Assembly (NCBI GenBank): GCA_965644495.1
Contig: CBFFSA010000001.1
Span: 186,001 to 250,000 of the forward strand
DNA length: 64,000 bases
Direction of reading: 5' to 3'
Source of the DNA: Perkinsela sp. CCAP 1560/9
Lineage: Eukaryota; Protista; Euglenozoa: Kinetoplastea
Within the stretch, counting starts at the first letter, position 1; each line of letters starts with the position of its first letter. Positions 13,215 through 49,317 of the stretch are shown here, piece after piece. The position numbers and the translations under genes are program-made. The notes beneath the pieces are model-generated. The model worked only from the letters and a program-made list of their open reading frames with translations. It was not told the origin of the DNA and made no database searches.

Positions 13215-14796
13215 GATGACTTTTTTTCAGTCAATTTGTACGAGTGCTTCACCATACGCGTTTTTTTTGCAGAATGCAACCCAAAATGAGCTGCATTTTC
13301 AGAGGAAAGAGGTCGGTGCTTAAATCGGGCGTGTACGCGATTCGATCGTGTGAGGAAACCCTTAGTGGGATTTATTTCATGTGCAATTTCATAGGCCGCC
13401 ACAGCCATAGAGGCCCCCAAGAGTTCTGCGTTTTTGACGGCGATTTCCGGGGTGTCTACTATGGGATATAAACCCTGTTCCGGGTTATTGTGCCCCCCCC
13501 TGCACAATAACTGGCTCTAGGCATAATAACTGGCTCTAGGCACAATAACTAAATATTGGAAAACCAAAAAAAGGGTTAAAAAAAATTGGCGCCGCTTCGC
13601 GGCGCCTTTTTTATGGACAAGCACGTTCATGTGCAGAATAAGTTCTATTTAAGGGATGCGTTGTTGAACAAACTACGTTATTTTCGAGAAAATGGGAATA
13701 AAAAACAACCAAAAAATTACGGCACCGACTGGCGGCGCCATATTTTGGAGTGGGGGGCACAATAACAGTGGTTGTTTCCACTTATTGTGCCCCCCCTGCA
13801 CAATAAGTAGCTCTAGGCACAATAACCCGGAACAGGGTTTAGTAGTCTTCGGCATGTATCGTATACCTTATTTTCGACGGCTTTCCATTGGTCGTCGTTA
13901 AGCTTTAGACACATTTTCCCTCCTGCTATGGATTTGTGTTGTTCAAGCAGACGAAGGCGTTGGTTTTCGTTTGTTTCATCCCACGATGGAACTCGATCTT
14001 CCGCAGTGTGCGAAACAGGGGGGAGAGGAGAAGGTCGGACGAGGGGTTCATTGCACCTGAGCGGTCCATATATTTTGCAACAGTTATGCAGACAGCATAA
14101 CTTGGCGGAGCATCGGTGACGGCATGGTTCTACTCGTGCGGTGTTCAGTGAGTGAAGTGTTGCATTTTTAGGAGTTGCGCCAGAGGGTGGCACATAACTA
14201 GCGCTATCTTTGTTGTCACCATTCGTCGCACCCACAATTGGCGCAGTATGTTGGCCCCCGTTTGTTGGCCCGTTTTCGCTAGGAGTCGCGCCAGAGGGTG
14301 ACACATACTTAGCGCTATCTTTGTTATCACCATTCGTCGTATCCACAATTGGCGCAGTATGTTGGCCCCCGTTTGTTGGCCCGTTTTCGCTAGCACTACT
14401 GGCAGGAATACGGTAAAAAATTATGACATTGCTCACGGCCCAGCCAGCCAAATTGGCAGCCTTTCGTAGAAAGTCACTGTCGTTGTCGTTGAGGTTTGGT
14501 GTTGTGGAATTCTTGTTGGTGTCGGTCCCATTTATTTCGGTTCCCTCGGAAGATGGGGCCGCTGGGATTGTACCAGGTAGGGGTTGTGTTGACGGCCTCG
14601 GACCGCGTCCTAGAGTTGTGTAGACACTCTCCAGTGATATTATGTTACATGGTTCGGTTTGTGGGTTTTCGTTTGTAGAAGTCGCGGAGACTGGAATGTC
14701 CACATGCGAAGATTGAATACCTCTTTTACAACAGAGGTGTCCGCACGTACTTTTGCTCTTGCACGAGTGACGGCATGGATGCAAGACGTTATTCAC
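13215..14796 (-). pseudogene. N-terminal fragment of a HERO-like retrotransposon ORF (two Mer3-type zinc fingers), interrupted by a MITE
   Basis: PCRHSCKSKSTCGHLCCKRG and PCRHRCSAKLCCLHNCCK motifs. After removing 13471-13839 and one TA the frame reads DTCRRLLYPIVDTPEIAVKNAELLGASMAVAAYEIAHEINPTKGF, which aligns with ERCEKYLKPAATPTEALRHADLLTACIAVSAYEIAREADPTKGF in ORF 44412-49253. Includes a 111-bp direct duplication at about 14171-14392. Confidence 0.85.
13471..13839. mobile_element. MITE with 24-bp perfect TIRs and TA TSD
   Basis: TA|AACCCTGTTCCGGGTTATTGTGCC...GGCACAATAACCCGGAACAGGGTT|TA. Internal GCACAATAAC repeats. Excision restores the host reading frame. Confidence 0.93.
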
Positions 14797-21331: not shown

Positions 21332-23960
21332 GACACCGAAGAAAGGGACCACTCACCCTCCCCCGATGCCTTGGCAGAACTGCTGGGGCAAAAATCTTTG
21401 CGTAAACTGCACGCGATACAATGCCTGGCATGGCGGGACTATGTCGCAGGCATCTGCTTTGGCTTCCTCAGCAAGTCGGCTGACGAGAAAGAGGAGATCG
21501 CTTGGAACCTCCTCTTGGCTGTCAAACGTTTTCTGTACCTCTCCGAGGACAAGCTTTCGCAGCGCCAACTGGCACGCGAATTGCGAATGAGGGCCCATTT
21601 GGAAGATTCGGAGACCTTGGCCCCATCTCCAAGTCAGGCCAACGATTCCCCCAGGTCCATAAATAAGAGGGTGGAGGAGCTGTGCAGGGCGTCGTGTTTT
21701 TCGAGGGCCGCGGCCACCCTTGAGGCGCCTCTCAACCCACCATCCAACCCCACGGTGGCCCTCGAACAAGCAAAGCGCCTGCACCCCACCGGGGGACCCT
21801 ATACGGCGGGGAAATACCAGTATGACGCGCAGAGGCACGGCACCCTTCCCTCCCCAGCCGACGTGGCCAGAAAGGCACAAAGCCTGGCCCCCATCCGCGC
21901 CCCAGGTCTCACGACCTGGGACCAAAGAACTCTTGGTCTCAGTCCTTCTGGAGGACGGACCCCGGGATTGTGTCACATGGCTGATCCACGGTATCATGTC
22001 TAACTCCCTCCCCCCCTCTATGAGGGAGCTCCTAACTGGGGCGTCCCTTAAACTCTTCTCCAAGCCGGACGCTCCGGCCGGACACCACTCGTCCTACAGT
22101 CCCATCGCCATGGGGGAGTGCATTCTGAAGGTGGCGGGCCTTCTTGCCTTAGAAAAAATCAGGGACCACCTCCCCACCTACTTCCAAGGTATACAATTCG
22201 GCGCCCAATACACCCAGGGGTGCGAGCACATAATATATAATGTGCGACAGCACTTTAGGGACAGGCCTAAGGAGGTAGTTGTCGCAGCCGACCTCGAAAA
22301 TGCTTTCAATAGCATTTCGAGGTCGGCCATCTTCCGGGCCGTAAGGCGGGACCCGAAGCTTCTCCCCACAGAGGGCATAACCCTATTCAGCTATGGGACC
22401 ACAAGCTCCCTCCATCTAGGGGAAGGGGCGACCATCACGAGCTCAAGGGGGGTAAAACAAGGGGACCCCATGGCCCCCATCCTCTTTGCCATTGGGATTC
22501 AGGGGGCGATCGCCCGAGTGGCTTCACAGGCGCACTCAAGGTCTGGGCATACCTTGATGACGTCACCTTCACGGGTGAACCAAAGGTATGCGCGGAAGCT
22601 CTGGAGGCCCTCAGCGAAGAGTTAAAAAACCTCGGACTACGGCTGAACGCCGCCAAGTGTAAAGTTGCCACAAGGCACGAAAAATTCTTCACAGAGTTCT
22701 CTGGGACTCGGATGATACATTCCCCAGGGGGGTTAAAACTCCTGGGGGCGTACATCGGGGAGTCCGAGGACAAGGAGGAGGATTGGGTTCTTTCCAGGAC
22801 CCCCAAGATGATCGCCTTCCTCGAGAAATTGAAGGAGATCAGCAGGCAATGCGCCTTGCCCCTCCTGAGGCTCTGCGGAAGCCCCAGATGGAACTTCATT
22901 GTGAGGACGCATGGGCCTCCGGTAACCAAAAGGGCCAACGACCAGGTCGATAAGGCCGTCATGGCATGTGCCGAGGCCCTGCTCGGGGGGATGGATTCCC
23001 TGTGGAAAACGCCGCTTACTAATAACCTTTTTACGGCTGATTTCCTGGGGACCATCCCCTTCGAGCACAAGGCCCAGGATATGCAGGTTAAGGCGAAAAA
23101 CGCCCTTCATGGCATAGCACCTGGAATTTCTGCCAAGGATCTACGACGCAACCTTTGTGTGGCAGCCCTGGGGAACGCCCCAACGGCAACCCAACTGATC
23201 TGCATGCGACAGATCCAGAATGTGCACTCCACCAAGTGGATGAGTGTCCTGCCGAACAGGCCGGAGTACTACATGCCGGATCCGCAGTGGAAGACTGCGG
23301 CCCGCCTCCGGTACCTGGTCACCCCGACCTCGGAGCCTGAGCTCCAGTGCGTGTGCGGTGCAACCCTCAGCAATGAGGAGTTTTGCGTACACGCACTGGA
23401 CTGCAAGAAGGTGAAGGGGAAAACTCAGGCCTCCCGCCATAAGGAAAGTAAAGAGACGTTTCGGAACCTCTTGGTCCATTATGGGTTCAACCCGGACCTC
23501 CACGAGCCGAGGTTCGACAACGGACGGGGGCCAGACATCTGTTTCCATCTGGGACGGAAGATCGTCCTGGTTGACGTCACAGTTGTGATCCCACTGGCCC
23601 CGTCGTACGTGGAGAAAGAGGCCGCGGAGCCATCCCACACGCTCAGGATGGCTGAGGCCAACAAAAGGCGCTCTCATGAGGAGATGGCGCTGGTGAGGGG
23701 CATGGAATTCCACCTTCTGGCCTTCTCCACGTACGGGATCCCGGGCCCAGAAACCTTGACCTTCCTCAACAAGGTAGCCCGGGCCCACTCATCGGACAAG
23801 AATGTGTGTCTCGCCCATCTCTTAATGGCCATCGGGGTGGCCATCCAGAGAGGGAATGCCCAGATTGTGCAGTCGGCGGTACAGGACTGGTACCGCCGCG
23901 GGGTTCGGGGGTAGGACCAGGGGGGGGGTAGGCTTCCGGTGGGCCTAGGGGGGTTAACAT
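21332..23960 (+). mobile_element. CRE-clade (CRE/SLACS/CZAR-like) RLE non-LTR retrotransposon, 5'-truncated, two frameshifts
   Basis: RT motifs PIAMGE, QFGAQ..QGCE, DLENAFNSISR, GVKQGDPMAPILF, WAYLDD, LKLLGAYIG; zinc knuckle CVCG...HALDC; RH...PD...DVTV endonuclease; QRGNA end. Frameshifts near 21920 and 22535. Confidence 0.9.
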
Positions 23961-42761: not shown

Positions 42762-44300
42762 AAAACAATATGTATTTCGAGTAGTATGATCTTATTCATA
42801 TAAAATTAATCTTTCGTTTCAGTCTTTGTACCCCATATAACACTTGCAATCGGGGTAAAAGGTTTCTGAATGTAAAAGAGTCCCTTTTGCGTGCAAATTT
42901 TTCATCATGAAACTTTATACAAAGCATGAAGATTCACAGAACATGAAGCCAGCGGTATCATCTGCAATTTTTTTACATGTTAAATCCTTTTTCGTTTAAT
43001 TTTTTTGTAATTAATTTCTTTAACTCTTTTAATTTAGCTAATGCATGTAATGCTTTGCATGCTGAATATGTTCACTTGAGGGGTTTTGAAGCCTCGCGAA
43101 ATTTCGCCCCACTTTCCTCACTCGGAATGTCGCACATGAGAATTCTTCTGTGAAAGACCTTGTGCACTCTGACGATTTTATCCAGAGGCTCTACTTCAGA
43201 AAAACCTTTACAAAAAGAGCGATCTGTTACCGTGCTGTCGCTGCCTGCACTGAATAATAATGTTGAAAATTCCCCATTTTATTGCCACTTAAATTGCTTC
43301 TGATCTACAGAAGTGTAGCTTGTAGCTGTTGCCTCGGCCGGAACCATCCCCCTTTGACATGTTTGCTCGATAATTTTGACTATTTATTGGTTTGGAAAAA
43401 TAGCGCTTAAACGGGGGGGACAGTATATTAATATTCATTGTTCGACAGTGTCGACTATATAGTGCTGACGTCCTTTTCCTCCTCGAATATCAATCAATGC
43501 GTCACAGGAATTCGCTTCAATATCTGTCTTCTTGAGATTCACTGCTCCTCTTCTCATTGATTTCTATAAATGCCATTCCCGAACTTTTCAGAAAAAAAAT
43601 ATAGATTTTCGAAAAATTATGTTTTTGAAGAAAAAAACAGGAAAAACTACGATAGAGGGGAGAACACGGCAGAAAGATCTGACCCTCACCCCCGACAAGG
43701 ACCTTGGATCTCACGTTCTGCGATAGCTTATCGCAGAAAATTAGCGTTTTTCCACCAGGGAGGATCACTAATCAGGACTTTTTGCCTAGCCATTCCCAGT
43801 AATTTCTATAAATAAATATAAATTTTCTTTTTTGTTATAAGCTATATTTATAGAAATTAATGAGAGGAGTAGTAGTTCGCTGTGATGCTGAAGTCCGAAA
43901 TACGCAACGGCGAAGCCTTGACCATACGTGAGTTCGCCTTGGTCTTTACAGTAATTTAGTCATAGACCGCATTTTCGTGAGTGTGATCGAGCCTCGAGGT
44001 TTGGGCTGGAGACAGATATTTAGGACGCCTTTGAATCGTCTGCGGAAGCGCAAGGTCTGCGACCAAATTGATCTTCCCATTGCCGCCAAACTACAGCGGC
44101 ATGGTAGGATTCCAAGTAGATCCTCGATAGAAGCGTGACAAGCTGAGATACAGCGCTAAGAGCGGCGTTGAGAAGGCATGCTATTGTAAACGAAATTTAT
44201 AGAATATTCCTATTGATGGAAACAACATGTTTTACACCCTTTCGTCTAGTGTTACAACTACGACCCGTGTGGGTCAAGAGAGTCCCGAGACTTCTGAATG

Positions 44301-47300
44301 TTTTTTGTTTATCATGCAGTATGACTGCACAGATTGTCACCTAAGAGAAATACACGTAGATCATGCATAAACCCCGCACAAAACGGGTTTCCCTTAAGCT
44401 TTTCATCATCGCTATATGCTGGCTTCCGTCCAGCTCGGGTTATCGCGGTTTTGAAAAATCGCGAAACTTCCTCGTATTGCTCTTTTGACAAGCTTCTGTC
44501 GACATTGCGAGGCGGTGGCCTTGCTACCTCCGAAAAGTGAGTTGAGCGCTCGCGTAGAGGAGTTGAGCTTCCCTCTGGCCCCCACTTCGATGACAAGAAG
44601 AAAGGTTGCCGGGTTAGTCATTTTCCTTTCGAGAAACAGATTCCCGTACTTCCGCACTTTCCGCTCATGTGAGGATAAAAAGTTTTCCTCCCACGGAGAA
44701 GTGAGCTCAAGTATGAACTCAGTACCATTATGTAGCTTGATCCACCCATCAGGTCTAAGGGCCGTGTCCTGTTGACTTGGCCATGTTCGGGGGTTTCGGT
44801 AAAGAGAAAGATCAAAGTGGTACTGCGCTGTTTCTGGGGATGCTCTTACGGCATCTGCGATAGCGTGGAGTATAAGATCATGGCGGAACGTGTAGCGGCC
44901 CTGTTCAAGGGCCACCTTGCACCCTGTGAGGACATGTCGAACTGTCTGCACCTCCTCATTGCAAATGGGACACTTTGTGTCCGTGTGCGTACTTAGACCC
45001 CAACGACGCAGTGCTGAACGAGTAGGTAGTGGTGTTTGGGTCAACACAGATGCAGTAAACCGGGAGAGTGCCTCACTGTTGATGTTACATACCGCAGCAG
45101 CAAAGTCTTTCGCAAGTTCGTCCTCAGTGGCCATACGGAACCACTGTGCCGCTATGGGAGCCCGTCGTTGCACGGATTCGGAAAGGTGTCGCTCGTATTC
45201 ACTCTCAATGAACCGCCGTGTCGCCACACGGTCTTCTCGTCGGTCGTACAGTTCAACTACTGGTTGGACGTGTCCCGTTGAGCGCTTGTGCAGTTCCCTG
45301 CGGATGCGGTGTCTTAAAGCCTGTTGCACAGCCGGGTCACGAGATTTCTGCATTTGCTCGACCAGTGTACTCGTGCAGAGTATCCACAGCTTTGAGAAAC
45401 TAGTTAAGGCCCACCCCCGCTCAGAATAGAGAAGTTCGCTGGTTGCAGTTTTGGCCATATTCACCCATTTCCGAATGTGTGTAGTCGCAAGCTTTTGCAG
45501 CCGCAGGATGAAATTCAGTGTGATTCCAGGATTTACCGTCAGAACGTAGCGTAGACGGGAAATAATGACGTTATTGTAGACCCAGAGGCGGGCGGGCGTA
45601 TCCATGGCACTTTCAGATACGTTGGTAAGCCAGTGGCGTAGTTGTGTACGGAGACTCTTGAACAACACTTTCCCTTGTTGGGCTCCAGGCGCTAGCGTCA
45701 TGCCCAGAAACTGGCTGCCTTTGTCGCAAACGTGGGGTATGCTTTCGCCGCCGGCACGGATGCGCGGTCTGTGGGTTTTGTATCCTCCATCCGCTACAGC
45801 CATATACTGAAGCCGACATTTCTGTACATTTAGCCGCATGCCTAATCTGGCGAGCACCTTTACCAGGGCGTTAGTAACATGCTGCATTTCTTCGGGTGAT
45901 TTGGTAATGACGGCAAGGTCGTCCGCAAACGCCTTAAGGAATGATTCTTGCCCGCCCCATGTGATGCCATATCCTGGAAAGCTGGATCGAAGGTACCTTA
46001 AAACTACCTCCATCGCAAGGTTGAATAGCACAGGAGATAGGGTGTCGCCTTGAAGAACGCCTCGTTCAACGGGAATGTGGTTAGTCAACCCCTCAGCACA
46101 CTTGACTCGGAGAGAAGCACTGGTATAGAGGGAGTGAACATATTCGATGATAATCGGCGACACCTTTGCCCATTGTAATACTTGGAAGAGGATCGAGTGT
46201 GGAAGAGAACCAAAGGCGTTTTTCAGGTCGAATTGACCCAAGCAGTATTGCCGTTTGTGCTGCCTCTGAAAATCCAGCAGTTCACAAAGCGCTTGCGTGT
46301 GTTCGATGGTTCCATTGACATTGGGGAGAAAGCTTTTTTGTATGGTCGTGTCGATGATCCCTGTGCTGACAGCGTGACTCAGAAGTTTGTGTCCTATGAT
46401 TGAGTGGAGTAGCTTCCCCAGACAGCTGGTCAGGCTGATAGGGCGCCAGTTCGACAGTTTATCCGTAGCCCCCCCTTTGTGGATGAGTCGAGTCACCGCT
46501 TGTTTCCAGTGGGTTGGACCTACGGAGTGTTTGAGTAGGTCGTTGAATACTTGGGCGATGAAGGGGTACAGCTCAGTGCAGCGTCGGAGGAAGGCGTTAC
46601 TTATGGTGTCAGGACCTGGTGCAGCGGACGGTCGCTTGGAGGAGATAGCCGCGGCTATGGTTTGCACGTCAATATCTTCCCACTTCATTTCGCTTTCGTT
46701 TCCAGCGCCAAGAAGATCAGTGGGGGGTAGAGTGTGGGTTTCGTTGCCAATGCTTAGTGTGTCCTTGAAGAACGTTTCAATAACTGCCTGTGGACAATTC
46801 GGGAAAATCGTTGGCTGTTTTCGCATCTTCTCGTTATTGTCGAGGCATTCCCCTCCTGCGGTCCAGGGGTTCCGTTGAAATCTGTCCGTCACCCATCTTT
46901 TCTCCCTTTCACGTCGCAGGAGATTTGCTTCTTCTGTGTAGAGGTTGCGGGCTTTCGTGGCTTCTTTTATGTTGCGTATCAGGCGATCTCTTTCCGAGCG
47001 GCCGTGTGTGTAAGAGAGGGTACGTTTTAATTGGCGGATATGTCCAGAAAGTTCCTTTGCTGAGCGATCGTAGCTGAGAGGTCGTGAAGCACGTTTGGTG
47101 TGGCCAGTCGTCGAACGCAGCTTGAATCCTTTCGTTGGGTCAGCCTCCCGCGCGATTTCATAAGCCGAGACTGCTATGCAGGCAGTTAACAAATCGGCAT
47201 GTCGCAGTGCTTCAGTTGGGGTTGCAGCTGGTTTAAGGTATTTCTCACATCGTTCGAACGACTTCTTGATTGCGCGTTGCCATTGCTCATGAGAAAGACT

Positions 47301-49317
47301 AGCCATTACTCGCCCTCCTTCAATCGTACGCAAGGTACTCAGCAAGTCTTCCGCAGTTTCTGGGCTTCCTGAACGATCGTTGCACGTTCTCATCCGTTGT
47401 GATTGCAGAATCGTGCGTACATTCGGTATACTATTTGGTTGCGTGTCATGATGTGGTAAATCCTGCTGTGTTGTACCCTGCACCTGTGTCTCGGTTTCTT
47501 CAATCACATCTATTCGGGCCTGTGTGTGATGTGCGGTCGTTTCGGCTTGCTGTTGGTCCTGTGGCATGTTCCTGTGCGTCTCGGGGTAACGTTGCGCTGC
47601 GGATCCGGTTGCATGGCCATCCCTTGTGCGTGCAGGGGCTGTGTTTTCGTTGGTACGCGTGCTCCCTGTGGTGAAGCCCCATGAAAGAAGATTGCGCAGG
47701 CTCCAGCGACTCGAGCCCGATCGGGGATCTTTAACTGGGCTTTGGACACCTTCCTTACAACACTTGTGCTTACATTCTTCCTTGTTGTGGCACAGGTGTT
47801 TGTAGGGTTTGTGCGAGGATTCTTCCCCCTCCGGTACCGTAGATGTGTCAGAAATTTTCCTTGCAGATGTTGGCTGTATGTGCTGCGCGTGCAGATTACG
47901 AGTGGAGGCAACATAGGTTTCATTATGTGGAATTCCAGGTCTACTGGGGTCGGTGGGTGTAGAACTATCGACCAGCACGCCAACTTTGCAACATCCATGT
48001 TTGCAATTCTGTTTGTCCCGACAGACATGCTTGCATGGCCGCCTTGTTGTGCTGTACATAGTCTGGTGTGGCTCATCTCGTAGTTGTGTCGAGTCGGTGT
48101 GGGGACTCTGAATCGTTCCCGTGGGTCGGTGCGTGCCTGCTTGAGAGGCCGGATCACATTCACCGCCTATTTTGCAACATGGGTGAAGGCATGTTAGTTT
48201 GTTTAGACAACGATACGCGCAGGGCTGTGAAAGCGTATACCCAGGTCTGGAGGCTGTTTGCTGCACTGCTACTAGAGCAGTAGGAGCCGCTTCAACGAGC
48301 TGACGAGCATTCAGATCGGAGGCAGGGTCGGTAATAGGCTCGGGTTCAATGCCCACTTTACAGCACGGATGTAGACATATTCGTTTGCTTAGGCATCGGT
48401 GTGCGCACGGCTGCGAACGCGTGGACTCAGGTCGTCTGCACGCTGTTGAATGTGGCGAAGCGTCAACCATGGAACCTGCTTCACCGAGCTGGCGCGCGTT
48501 CGGATCGGAGGCAGGGTCGGGAATGGGTTCGGATTCAATGCCCACTTTACAGCATGGATGGAGACATGTTAGTTTGTTTAGGCATCGGTGCGCGCACGGC
48601 TGCGTACGTAACGACCGTGTTCCTCGAGAATCATTCGGTTGCCTCGGCGCGCGAATTGCGAGTGGCTCATCATACGAGATCTTGGGATTTTCCCAAGGGA
48701 TTTCGTCGGACGTCTGTTCCCTCTGCGATACGTGGGTTATGTCGAAGGATGCCAATCCTGGGATATCGTGACCAGCCAGTTTCTTCTTAATCGCCCTACC
48801 GAGTGTGCCAGGGCAAGAGTATTGTTGGCTGAGATTCAGGACTTCGTCTGCGTGCGCCGCGGTCCAGCTGGCGTGTCGAAAAATGCGGTGGGGCGGCGCA
48901 GTTTCTTTGAACACAAAGTGTTCACAAGCTTCTTCGTCCATCACTTCTTGTAAAGTACATTTCTCGATTAGAATACCATCGGTTCTCTTCGCTCCAGTAT
49001 CCAAAGTGCGTGCCAAGGAAAGCTCCGCTGTGATTTCTGTATTAAAGTGTTTCTTTTCAGTAAGGAAGGAGGCCGCCGCGTGAATATCGGAGAAGTATAT
49101 CCAAAGCGAGGAAGTCGAGTGTCTGATTTTAATCGGTATTGCGCGCTGCTGAGTGAAGTGGAAGCTGTGCTTACGCGATGATTTTGCGCCAGCAGATCCT
49201 CGAGGGAGGTCGCCTTGCGCTTGGGGGGCAGAGGTGGAGGGGGGAAGTGCCATGCCCCAGTAGGGGAGGATAACAGTTAGTACAAATGATGAAATAATTC
49301 AACAAGGTACAGAAACT
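44301..49317 (-). mobile_element. Probable full extent of the HERO-like element
   Basis: 5' end inferred at an SL-like 18-mer (49300-49317). 3' end inferred at A-rich ATAAACAAAAAA about 100 nt after the stop. No convincing TSD found. Confidence 0.6.
44412..49253 (-). CDS. HERO-like non-LTR retrotransposon polyprotein: zinc-finger array, RT, CCHC knuckle, restriction-like endonuclease
   Basis: Intact 1613-aa ORF. APGPD, NWRPISL, DLKNAFGSLPH, GVLQGDTLSPVLFN, AFADD, QFLG; CPIC...HVLTGC; GRYTFRHD...RPDG...ELTSPWEE...ERKVRKY...EVGARG (HERO-type RLE signature). Confidence 0.95.
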   Translation of the reverse strand: MALPPSTSAPQAQGDLPRGSAGAKSSRKHSFHFTQQRAIPIKIRHSTSSLWIYFSDIHAAASFLTEKKHFNTEITAELSLARTLDTGAKRTDGILIEKCTLQEVMDEEACEHFVFKETAPPHRIFRHASWTAAHADEVLNLSQQYSCPGTLGRAIKKKLAGHDIPGLASFDITHVSQREQTSDEIPWENPKISYDEPLAIRAPRQPNDSRGTRSLRTQPCAHRCLNKLTCLHPCCKVGIESEPIPDPASDPNARQLGEAGSMVDASPHSTACRRPESTRSQPCAHRCLSKRICLHPCCKVGIEPEPITDPASDLNARQLVEAAPTALVAVQQTASRPGYTLSQPCAYRCLNKLTCLHPCCKIGGECDPASQAGTHRPTGTIQSPHTDSTQLRDEPHQTMYSTTRRPCKHVCRDKQNCKHGCCKVGVLVDSSTPTDPSRPGIPHNETYVASTRNLHAQHIQPTSARKISDTSTVPEGEESSHKPYKHLCHNKEECKHKCCKEGVQSPVKDPRSGSSRWSLRNLLSWGFTTGSTRTNENTAPARTRDGHATGSAAQRYPETHRNMPQDQQQAETTAHHTQARIDVIEETETQVQGTTQQDLPHHDTQPNSIPNVRTILQSQRMRTCNDRSGSPETAEDLLSTLRTIEGGRVMASLSHEQWQRAIKKSFERCEKYLKPAATPTEALRHADLLTACIAVSAYEIAREADPTKGFKLRSTTGHTKRASRPLSYDRSAKELSGHIRQLKRTLSYTHGRSERDRLIRNIKEATKARNLYTEEANLLRREREKRWVTDRFQRNPWTAGGECLDNNEKMRKQPTIFPNCPQAVIETFFKDTLSIGNETHTLPPTDLLGAGNESEMKWEDIDVQTIAAAISSKRPSAAPGPDTISNAFLRRCTELYPFIAQVFNDLLKHSVGPTHWKQAVTRLIHKGGATDKLSNWRPISLTSCLGKLLHSIIGHKLLSHAVSTGIIDTTIQKSFLPNVNGTIEHTQALCELLDFQRQHKRQYCLGQFDLKNAFGSLPHSILFQVLQWAKVSPIIIEYVHSLYTSASLRVKCAEGLTNHIPVERGVLQGDTLSPVLFNLAMEVVLRYLRSSFPGYGITWGGQESFLKAFADDLAVITKSPEEMQHVTNALVKVLARLGMRLNVQKCRLQYMAVADGGYKTHRPRIRAGGESIPHVCDKGSQFLGMTLAPGAQQGKVLFKSLRTQLRHWLTNVSESAMDTPARLWVYNNVIISRLRYVLTVNPGITLNFILRLQKLATTHIRKWVNMAKTATSELLYSERGWALTSFSKLWILCTSTLVEQMQKSRDPAVQQALRHRIRRELHKRSTGHVQPVVELYDRREDRVATRRFIESEYERHLSESVQRRAPIAAQWFRMATEDELAKDFAAAVCNINSEALSRFTASVLTQTPLPTRSALRRWGLSTHTDTKCPICNEEVQTVRHVLTGCKVALEQGRYTFRHDLILHAIADAVRASPETAQYHFDLSLYRNPRTWPSQQDTALRPDGWIKLHNGTEFILELTSPWEENFLSSHERKVRKYGNLFLERKMTNPATFLLVIEVGARGKLNSSTRALNSLFGGSKATASQCRQKLVKRAIRGSFAIFQNRDNPSWTEASI

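Follow-up and report, generated by a model that had tools for sequence, protein, structure and literature searches.

Why should a retrotransposon carry, five times over, a Cys/His finger of a meiotic helicase? The question is raised by a 64,000-nucleotide stretch of the genome of Perkinsela sp. CCAP 1560/9 (contig CBFFSA010000001.1, positions 186,001 to 250,000; this whole stretch is called the window below), whose reverse strand holds a single open reading frame (ORF) of 1613 amino acids (aa) with a reverse transcriptase (RT), a restriction-like endonuclease (RLE) region and, ahead of both, five spaced units that resemble the finger of the helicase Mer3/HFM1. From our analyses we consider, with a probability of roughly 60%, that this is a young and intact element of the R2 supergroup, the N-terminus of which would be its nucleic-acid-binding part, most likely for target DNA. 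Binding of target DNA is argued by analogy with the zinc fingers and Myb domains of R2 and with the module strings of homing endonucleases. The N-terminal plan recurred in every member of the family examined, with two beta-beta-helix-helix-beta modules and one to five fingers on fast-evolving linkers. Full-text literature searches retrieved no paper in which retrotransposon proteins are connected with this finger or with NUMOD modules, in agreement with the original prediction that the N-terminus is unlike those of described retroelements. The coordinates of all features are collected in Table 1.

The ORF proved as intact as predicted, and its RVT_1 match is accompanied by an alignment with R2 proteins that continues through the RLE. 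The best matches among solved structures were the R2 proteins 9nl3_A and 9dou_A (phmmer, E about 1e-31), which aligned with aa 863-1580 at low identity (112 bits over about 720 aa); structures of L1 ORF2p matched the RT part only in the sequence search of the PDB. No APE domain was found among the Pfam matches of the ORF, the RLE part alone had no match in the PDB, and the RT retrieved only generic RT clusters in the ESM-Atlas search. The RVT_1 domain, the CCHC knuckle, the RLE motifs and the R2 alignment together therefore identify an RLE-type retrotransposon without long terminal repeats (non-LTR). By its sequence, the element is an RLE-bearing non-LTR long interspersed nuclear element (LINE) of the R2 supergroup, a placement that reaches supergroup level only. 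In a word-limited protein search, the closest public proteins were 40-64% identical and were all ENA records. One of these relatives could be traced (P0001): it has the same three fingers as an element of the genome that was searched for copies (G000; 21 Mb in 110 contigs, from a kinetoplastid-lineage protist) and matches an element of this genome. The next relatives, traced to other samples, were unnamed metagenomic LINEs of about 25% identity; C2H2 fingers are present in one of them and a UCH protease in another.

The repeated unit, C-x-H-x-C-x5-C-x-H-x-CC-K-x-G, had been likened to the Mer3/HFM1 finger from its letters. Sequence comparison leads us to the same identification, because profile searches match in both directions and include named HFM1 and MER3 proteins. 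In the forward direction, a 30-column profile built from retroelement fingers only was run with HMMER against 1.84 billion representative proteins and gave 191 matches at E<=1e-3, at least 20 of which were long Mer3-helicase homologues with one finger after the helicase core, or two in some yeasts. The named helicase matches, among them HFM1 of Lepisosteus oculatus, an "ATP-dependent DNA helicase MER3" of Blastocladiella, and chytrid and Pichia/Candida proteins, scored E 1e-4 to 4e-7 in these 1.84e9 proteins. Three of the helicases were scanned with Pfam and contained DEAD, Helicase_C and wHTH domains and a single Sec63 domain, followed by the finger, which was covered by no Pfam model. In the reverse direction, a hidden Markov model (HMM) built on 22 fingers, taken from 20 Mer3-like helicases, found five domains in the 1613-aa ORF (139 bits) and two in a degraded relative at 13223-14796. 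It matched neither the other window ORFs (546 of at least 50 aa) nor 120 other Ski2-like helicases. The finger motif was not found in any solved structure by PDB sequence search; zinc binding is predicted. In human HFM1 the zinc-finger motif lies at about C1157, the site of a reported infertility variant, C1157Y (PMC8383409).

The host encodes a Mer3/HFM1 orthologue of 1516 aa with a single Sec63 domain and a long C-terminal tail (G000:C1:946421-950971; L034:3422-7972). Its best named matches were proteins of Trypanosoma and of the PhM_4 and PhF_6 transcriptomes, the latter two of which we take to be from prokinetoplastid isolates. No Cys/His finger was present in the host Mer3 or in the Trypanosoma and Leishmania orthologues retrieved, and a recent capture of the finger from the host Mer3 is therefore unlikely. 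Elsewhere, the finger occurred in protein fragments with RNase_T, SNF2 ATPase, OTU or zf-CCHC domains, and an SNF2-family ATPase of 1581 aa (P0295) has it at the C-terminus. A GC-rich non-LTR RT ORF of an unrelated environmental eukaryote (L044:954-3524, JGI metagenome 3300045502) contains two HFM1-type fingers directly before the stop codon. This C-terminal pair suggests that retroelements have acquired the finger on more than one occasion and at either end.

Within the window, five fingers were found where they had been predicted, including one with a His to Tyr and one with a Cys to Tyr replacement, and the predicted variation in number was seen as five fingers in the ORF against two in the 13223-14796 relative. 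There were no other full finger matches in the six frames of the 64 kb. A loose regular expression also matched a degenerate place in the same ORF (44651-44707), which is rejected by a stricter pattern and by the Mer3 profile. All seven ligands are present in three of the five units. The first His of finger 3 is Tyr in both the window copy and its sibling copy (see below), and the first Cys of finger 5 is Tyr in the window copy only, being Cys in the 99.4% identical sibling. We estimate the chance expectation of seven fixed Cys/His in 16 residues at about 1e-6 per window. The fingers have a basic composition (3-7 Lys/Arg in 23 residues). Across 36 diverged fingers (33-70% identical to the first), the seven Cys/His are invariant and two Lys nearly so.

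A repeat search placed fingers 1-3 in direct repeats of 186/189 bp that are 70-88% identical; Tandem Repeats Finder called no repeat there. The nearest family has a four-finger array in which two units are of the CAHRC type. From these repeats and the CAHRC-type units, the fingers appear to have been gained by tandem duplication, which would have involved units of about 63 codons. A search of the genome with the finger region gave 143 matches, many of which lie in long open frames, and those loci that were checked against the 1613-aa ORF run on into the same LINE body; the finger count of relatives varies from one to five. Selection was assessed by comparing the element with three other families, between which synonymous sites are saturated. 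Relative to the nearest family, non-synonymous divergence was 0.12 in the finger cores, 0.09 in the RT, 0.18 in the N-terminal domain and 0.47 in the linkers. Judged from these sequence comparisons, selection on the finger cores is about as strong as on the RT, and the linkers evolve fast. In a sister LINE family (P0185, 672 aa), five fingers stand before the NUMOD-like domain and not after it, an order from which we read that modules are shuffled between families.

The region upstream of the fingers (aa ~30-205) is conserved across the family at 29-70% identity, and at least 45 copies of this N-terminal domain, the most divergent 31% identical, were found in the genome. AlphaFold models aa 35-178 as two beta-beta-helix-helix-beta modules with a predicted local distance difference test (pLDDT) score of about 90. 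When module 1 was compared with 48,161 PDB chains by VIA-align, the top three were I-HmuI (residues 116-174 of its C-terminal DNA-binding region; Z 6.1, root-mean-square deviation (rmsd) 2.2 A over 59 aa), a DNA-binding sCTP of Paulinella (Z 5.7) and the DNA-binding domain of I-TevI (Z 5.2). Its shape neighbours in the ESM-Atlas were mostly GIY-YIG/HNH endonuclease clusters (rmsd 1.7-2.7 A over 59-70 aa), of which PF07453 NUMOD1 was carried in 5 of 10 and PF22083 was also carried. The original prediction of a NUMOD1/IENR1-like segment (IPIKI...HAAASFL) has some support at the level of the predicted fold, with I-HmuI, I-TevI and NUMOD1 clusters as neighbours, and has no counterpart in a Pfam sequence match. 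Module 2 matched AcrVA3 (Z 5.9), I-HmuI 118-174 (Z 4.7) and the Paulinella sCTP (Z 3.5). The Myb-like segment that had been proposed here has to be abandoned: the model (pLDDT 93) consists of three strands and two helices in the order beta-beta-alpha-alpha-beta, no Myb/SANT chain was among the 50 matches listed, and there was no Pfam match. We regard module 1 as NUMOD1-like and module 2 as probably of the same fold, both on the strength of the models. Neither the N-terminal 503 aa nor eight relatives gave a relevant Pfam match, and none came from a sequence search of the N-terminus against the PDB at E<=10, a Foldseek search of the N-terminal model against the PDB or an ESM-Atlas search by features of the finger region; consistent matches were obtained with two methods only, exhaustive structural alignment and the Atlas search by shape. 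An internal duplication has no support from sequence, the two modules matching each other by hhalign at a non-significant E of 0.13.

The limits of the element were set by alignment (blastn) with a sibling copy (G000:C1:2073419-2078406), which matches it over exactly 4,988 bp at 99.4% identity. As similarity ends at both borders, the element corresponds to window positions 44300-49287 on the reverse strand. The ORF is open in both full-length copies, and their 27 nucleotide (nt) differences comprise 9 synonymous and 18 non-synonymous changes, which is near-neutral drift of young copies. A further copy, 98.8% identical and with the same 3' end, measures at least 1.6 kb and extends past the fetched locus, which does not include its 5' end. 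Signs of target-primed reverse transcription were found in a 5'-truncated copy of 333 bp, which has the same 3' end and a tail of about 24 A, and in A-rich or poly(A) 3' ends. Reads from the DNA runs of the organism contain a loose poly(T) end before 44301, at the 3' boundary of the element. The copies are dispersed, with flanks unrelated to one another, and no empty-site allele was seen. The near identity of the two intact copies and the existence of truncated poly(A) copies mark the element as recently mobile, and the original suggestion that its ORF may still be active rests on the same copies. The 333-bp poly(A) copy is present four times at a spacing of 5,370 bp (G000:C53:22229-38459; L050-L053); these four arose by tandem amplification of a 5,370-bp host segment containing the copy.

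A piece of the spliced leader (SL) stands in front of each of the two full-length copies, separated from the element in the window copy by an extra 12-nt linker. The genuine SL RNA gene, of which an array of two copies 297 bp apart was found at G000:C1:661319-661633 (L039, L040), has an exon of 38 nt, AACTTTAACGATAAAGATACAGTTTCTGTACCTTGTTG, which ends in CAGTTTCTGTACCTTGTTG and is directly followed by GTATGAGAAGCT. The heads of window positions 49288-49317 and of loci L002, L003, L006-L009, L015-L019, L023, L024, L029 and L030 were compared. Full-length members of the family begin with SL nt ~11-38, and the window copy has nt 21-38 only, an 18-mer that occurs 506 times in the genome. After the SL piece comes a linker of 0 to 14 nt (AATTATTT..CA..) and then TTTTGTACTAAC. 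The end of the SL exon abuts the element directly, without the SL intron, and no AG precedes the SL/element junctions in the copies examined. Starts in the SL piece, together with poly(A) ends in some copies, point to an RNA template that would have been SL-headed and polyadenylated, its copies inheriting the SL piece. Master copies and template switching are candidates for the way in which the SL is re-acquired in each generation. At the other end, the 3' untranslated region (UTR) of about 110 nt was compared among four sequences (window 44300-44411, L042:5371-5475, L043:5620-5722 and L045:6426-6520) and may form two hairpins, CGTTTTGTGCG loop and AATCTCTGCAG..CTGCATGA, in which two pairs show compensatory changes. 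From these four sequences, the hairpins are likely to be the recognition signal of the RT.

How might such an N-terminus work? The zinc-finger and Myb domains at the N-terminus of R2 bind target DNA. By analogy, the modules and fingers of the present element would form a beads-on-a-string N-terminus that holds the enzyme on the target DNA while the RLE makes its nick and target-primed reverse transcription follows, for which R2 uses C2H2 fingers and Myb. That the finger is used repeatedly beside DNA-binding modules, and is kept by purifying selection, speaks for nucleic-acid binding. This nucleic acid may be RNA and not target DNA, the array then serving to bind or chaperone the element's own RNA, for example at the two conserved 3' UTR hairpins, much like the CCHC units of ORF1p or gag. 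A single ORF with no separate ORF1, fingers that are short, basic, knuckle-like and in tandem, and the company of an RNase_T exonuclease and zf-CCHC in other proteins would all suit such a role. We nevertheless think it rather unlikely, as the array occupies the position of the DNA-binding N-terminus of R2, the adjoining modules resemble DNA-binding units of homing endonucleases, and Mer3/HFM1 and an SNF2 protein, which carry the finger, are motors that act on DNA. Protein-protein contacts, either for dimerisation or for recruitment of a host factor, are another conceivable function. R2-type integration is thought to need two subunits, and we expect the C-terminal region of yeast Mer3 to hold the finger. 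The description of this region (PMC10201424) is limited to its being unstructured and its contribution to self-association, which favours contacts between proteins and weighs against target-DNA binding. The range of one to five fingers, their basic composition and their nuclease and helicase company fit nucleic-acid binding better, and a contact function without nucleic-acid binding appears improbable to us.

That the array is a decaying, functionless passenger, with a convergent or accidental likeness to Mer3, is close to refuted. It is true that one ligand is missing from two of the window copy's five units and that non-synonymous changes outnumber synonymous ones between the two young copies; yet in any LINE individual copies are expected to differ by near-neutral changes, and between families the finger cores, unlike the linkers, are constrained like the RT. 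The invariance of the seven ligands in diverged fingers and the significance of the profile searches in both directions speak against it as well. Binding of target DNA remains the reading we prefer, and several further observations weigh against it. The role of the finger in Mer3/HFM1 itself gives no precedent for binding by the array, which is argued by analogy. No Pfam NUMOD1 match was obtained at E<=10 for the ORF or seven relatives, and the fold matches are modest, with Z of 5-6 below the typical best Z of 7-8 that the tool returns for unrelated models. The few junctions available showed neither a common target motif nor a clear target-site duplication, and the element and its mobility are known from DNA copies: no run recorded as RNA contained the element, and the one possible RNA run yielded nothing.

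Comparison with known systems shows both the kinship of the element and its peculiarity. Like the element, R2 (R2Bm, R2Tg; 8gh6, 9dou, 9nl3) has a single ORF in which an N-terminus of small modules is followed by the RT, a CCHC knuckle and the RLE. R2 differs in its C2H2 fingers and Myb and in its single 28S rDNA site, whereas the element has NUMOD1-like modules, HFM1-type fingers and dispersed copies, and no C2H2 or Myb match in Pfam. The CRE clade (SLACS, CZAR, CRE1/2) also consists of kinetoplastid RLE LINEs linked to the spliced leader, and CRE elements insert in SL RNA genes between nt 11 and 12. Compared by insertion habit, the element is different, its SL piece being a retro-copied head on dispersed copies. 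CRE-type insertion at SL nt 11/12 was rejected for it, given this dispersal and the joining of the SL exon end without the SL intron. The HERO clade of Repbase is RLE-bearing and mostly not site-specific (PMC4640811). It resembles the element in its RLE and dispersed copies, in a comparison by description only, and the label "HERO-like" first given to the element is a candidate assignment. The Mer3/HFM1 finger and that of the retroelements share the same motif with the same conserved Lys and Gly; the helicases have one finger (some yeasts two) after Sec63, and the retroelements have one to five before the RT. Homing endonucleases such as I-TevI and I-HmuI (NUMOD1/IENR1) also string small DNA-binding units on flexible linkers that resemble module 1 in its predicted fold, and I-TevI joins a zinc finger with such units (cf. 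1t2t). Their modules are attached to a GIY-YIG or HNH nuclease, and those of the element to an RT/RLE enzyme, without detectable sequence similarity to Pfam NUMOD1.

Where a LINE integrates, and in what way, is decided by its N-terminus, and gene-insertion tools are being developed from R2-type enzymes. The replacement of C2H2 fingers and Myb by homing-endonuclease-like modules and a tunable finger array would widen the repertoire of LINE targeting parts. The Mer3/HFM1 finger itself has been kept from fungi to vertebrates and has neither a Pfam model nor a solved structure; the retroelement offers a second setting for its study, with dozens of natural variants for binding studies. More speculatively, and in our view unlikely, the finger may be a portable module that reads DNA structure (a nick, flap, D-loop or branched joint) and not sequence, the helicase and the LINE both holding strand-invasion or priming intermediates. 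If this is true, it would constitute a previously unrecognised route of target engagement for an RLE retrotransposon and give a first experimental handle on the helicase finger, in which the human infertility variant C1157Y has been reported.

Table 1. Positions of the element, its predicted parts and a finger-bearing relative in the window
Feature	Position	Strand	Basis or remark
Full-length element body	44300..49287	-	blastn against sibling G000:C1:2073419-2078406
3' UTR with two conserved putative hairpins and short A-rich end	44300..44411	-	kept between families with saturated synonymous sites
Single intact ORF, 1613 aa, no stops	44412..49253	-	sibling ORF also intact
RLE region, aa 1456-1561	44571..44888	-	RHD, RPD, ELT, KxxKY and GxxG motifs
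CCHC knuckle CPIC...H...C, aa 1428-1445	44907..45077	-	Pfam zf-RVT at aa 1393-1449, 26.4 bits, slightly under the cut-off of 27.5
RT, aa 925-1185, FADD at 1109-1112	45699..46481	-	Pfam RVT_1, E 8.6e-31
Finger 5, aa 484-499	47757..47804	-	Mer3-finger HMM, 30.0 bits
Finger 4, aa 407-422	47988..48035	-	39.2 bits; nearest to family consensus RRPCKHxCRDKxxCKHxCCKVGV
Finger 3, aa 345-360	48174..48221	-	25.7 bits; third copy of 186/189-bp unit
Finger 2, aa 283-298	48360..48407	-	31.8 bits; in 189-bp unit repeated at 88% identity
Finger 1, aa 220-235	48549..48596	-	Mer3-finger HMM, 36.6 bits
Module 2, aa 108-178, same predicted topology as module 1	48720..48932	-	AF2, pLDDT 93 folded alone
Module 1, aa 35-103, NUMOD1/IENR1-like predicted fold	48945..49151	-	AF2, pLDDT about 90; VIA-align, ESM-Atlas
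Retro-copied 5' head	49288..49317	-	SL nt 21-38 (49300-49317) and 12-nt linker (49288-49299)
Degraded, 3'-truncated relative with two fingers (14728-14775, 14077-14124), no RT	13223..14796	-	Mer3-finger HMM

The window also contains a second, unrelated RT-bearing element on the forward strand at 21720-23914, with ORFs at 21720-22625 and 22712-23914. Its RT, at 22089-22666, is 26% identical to that of the 1613-aa ORF.

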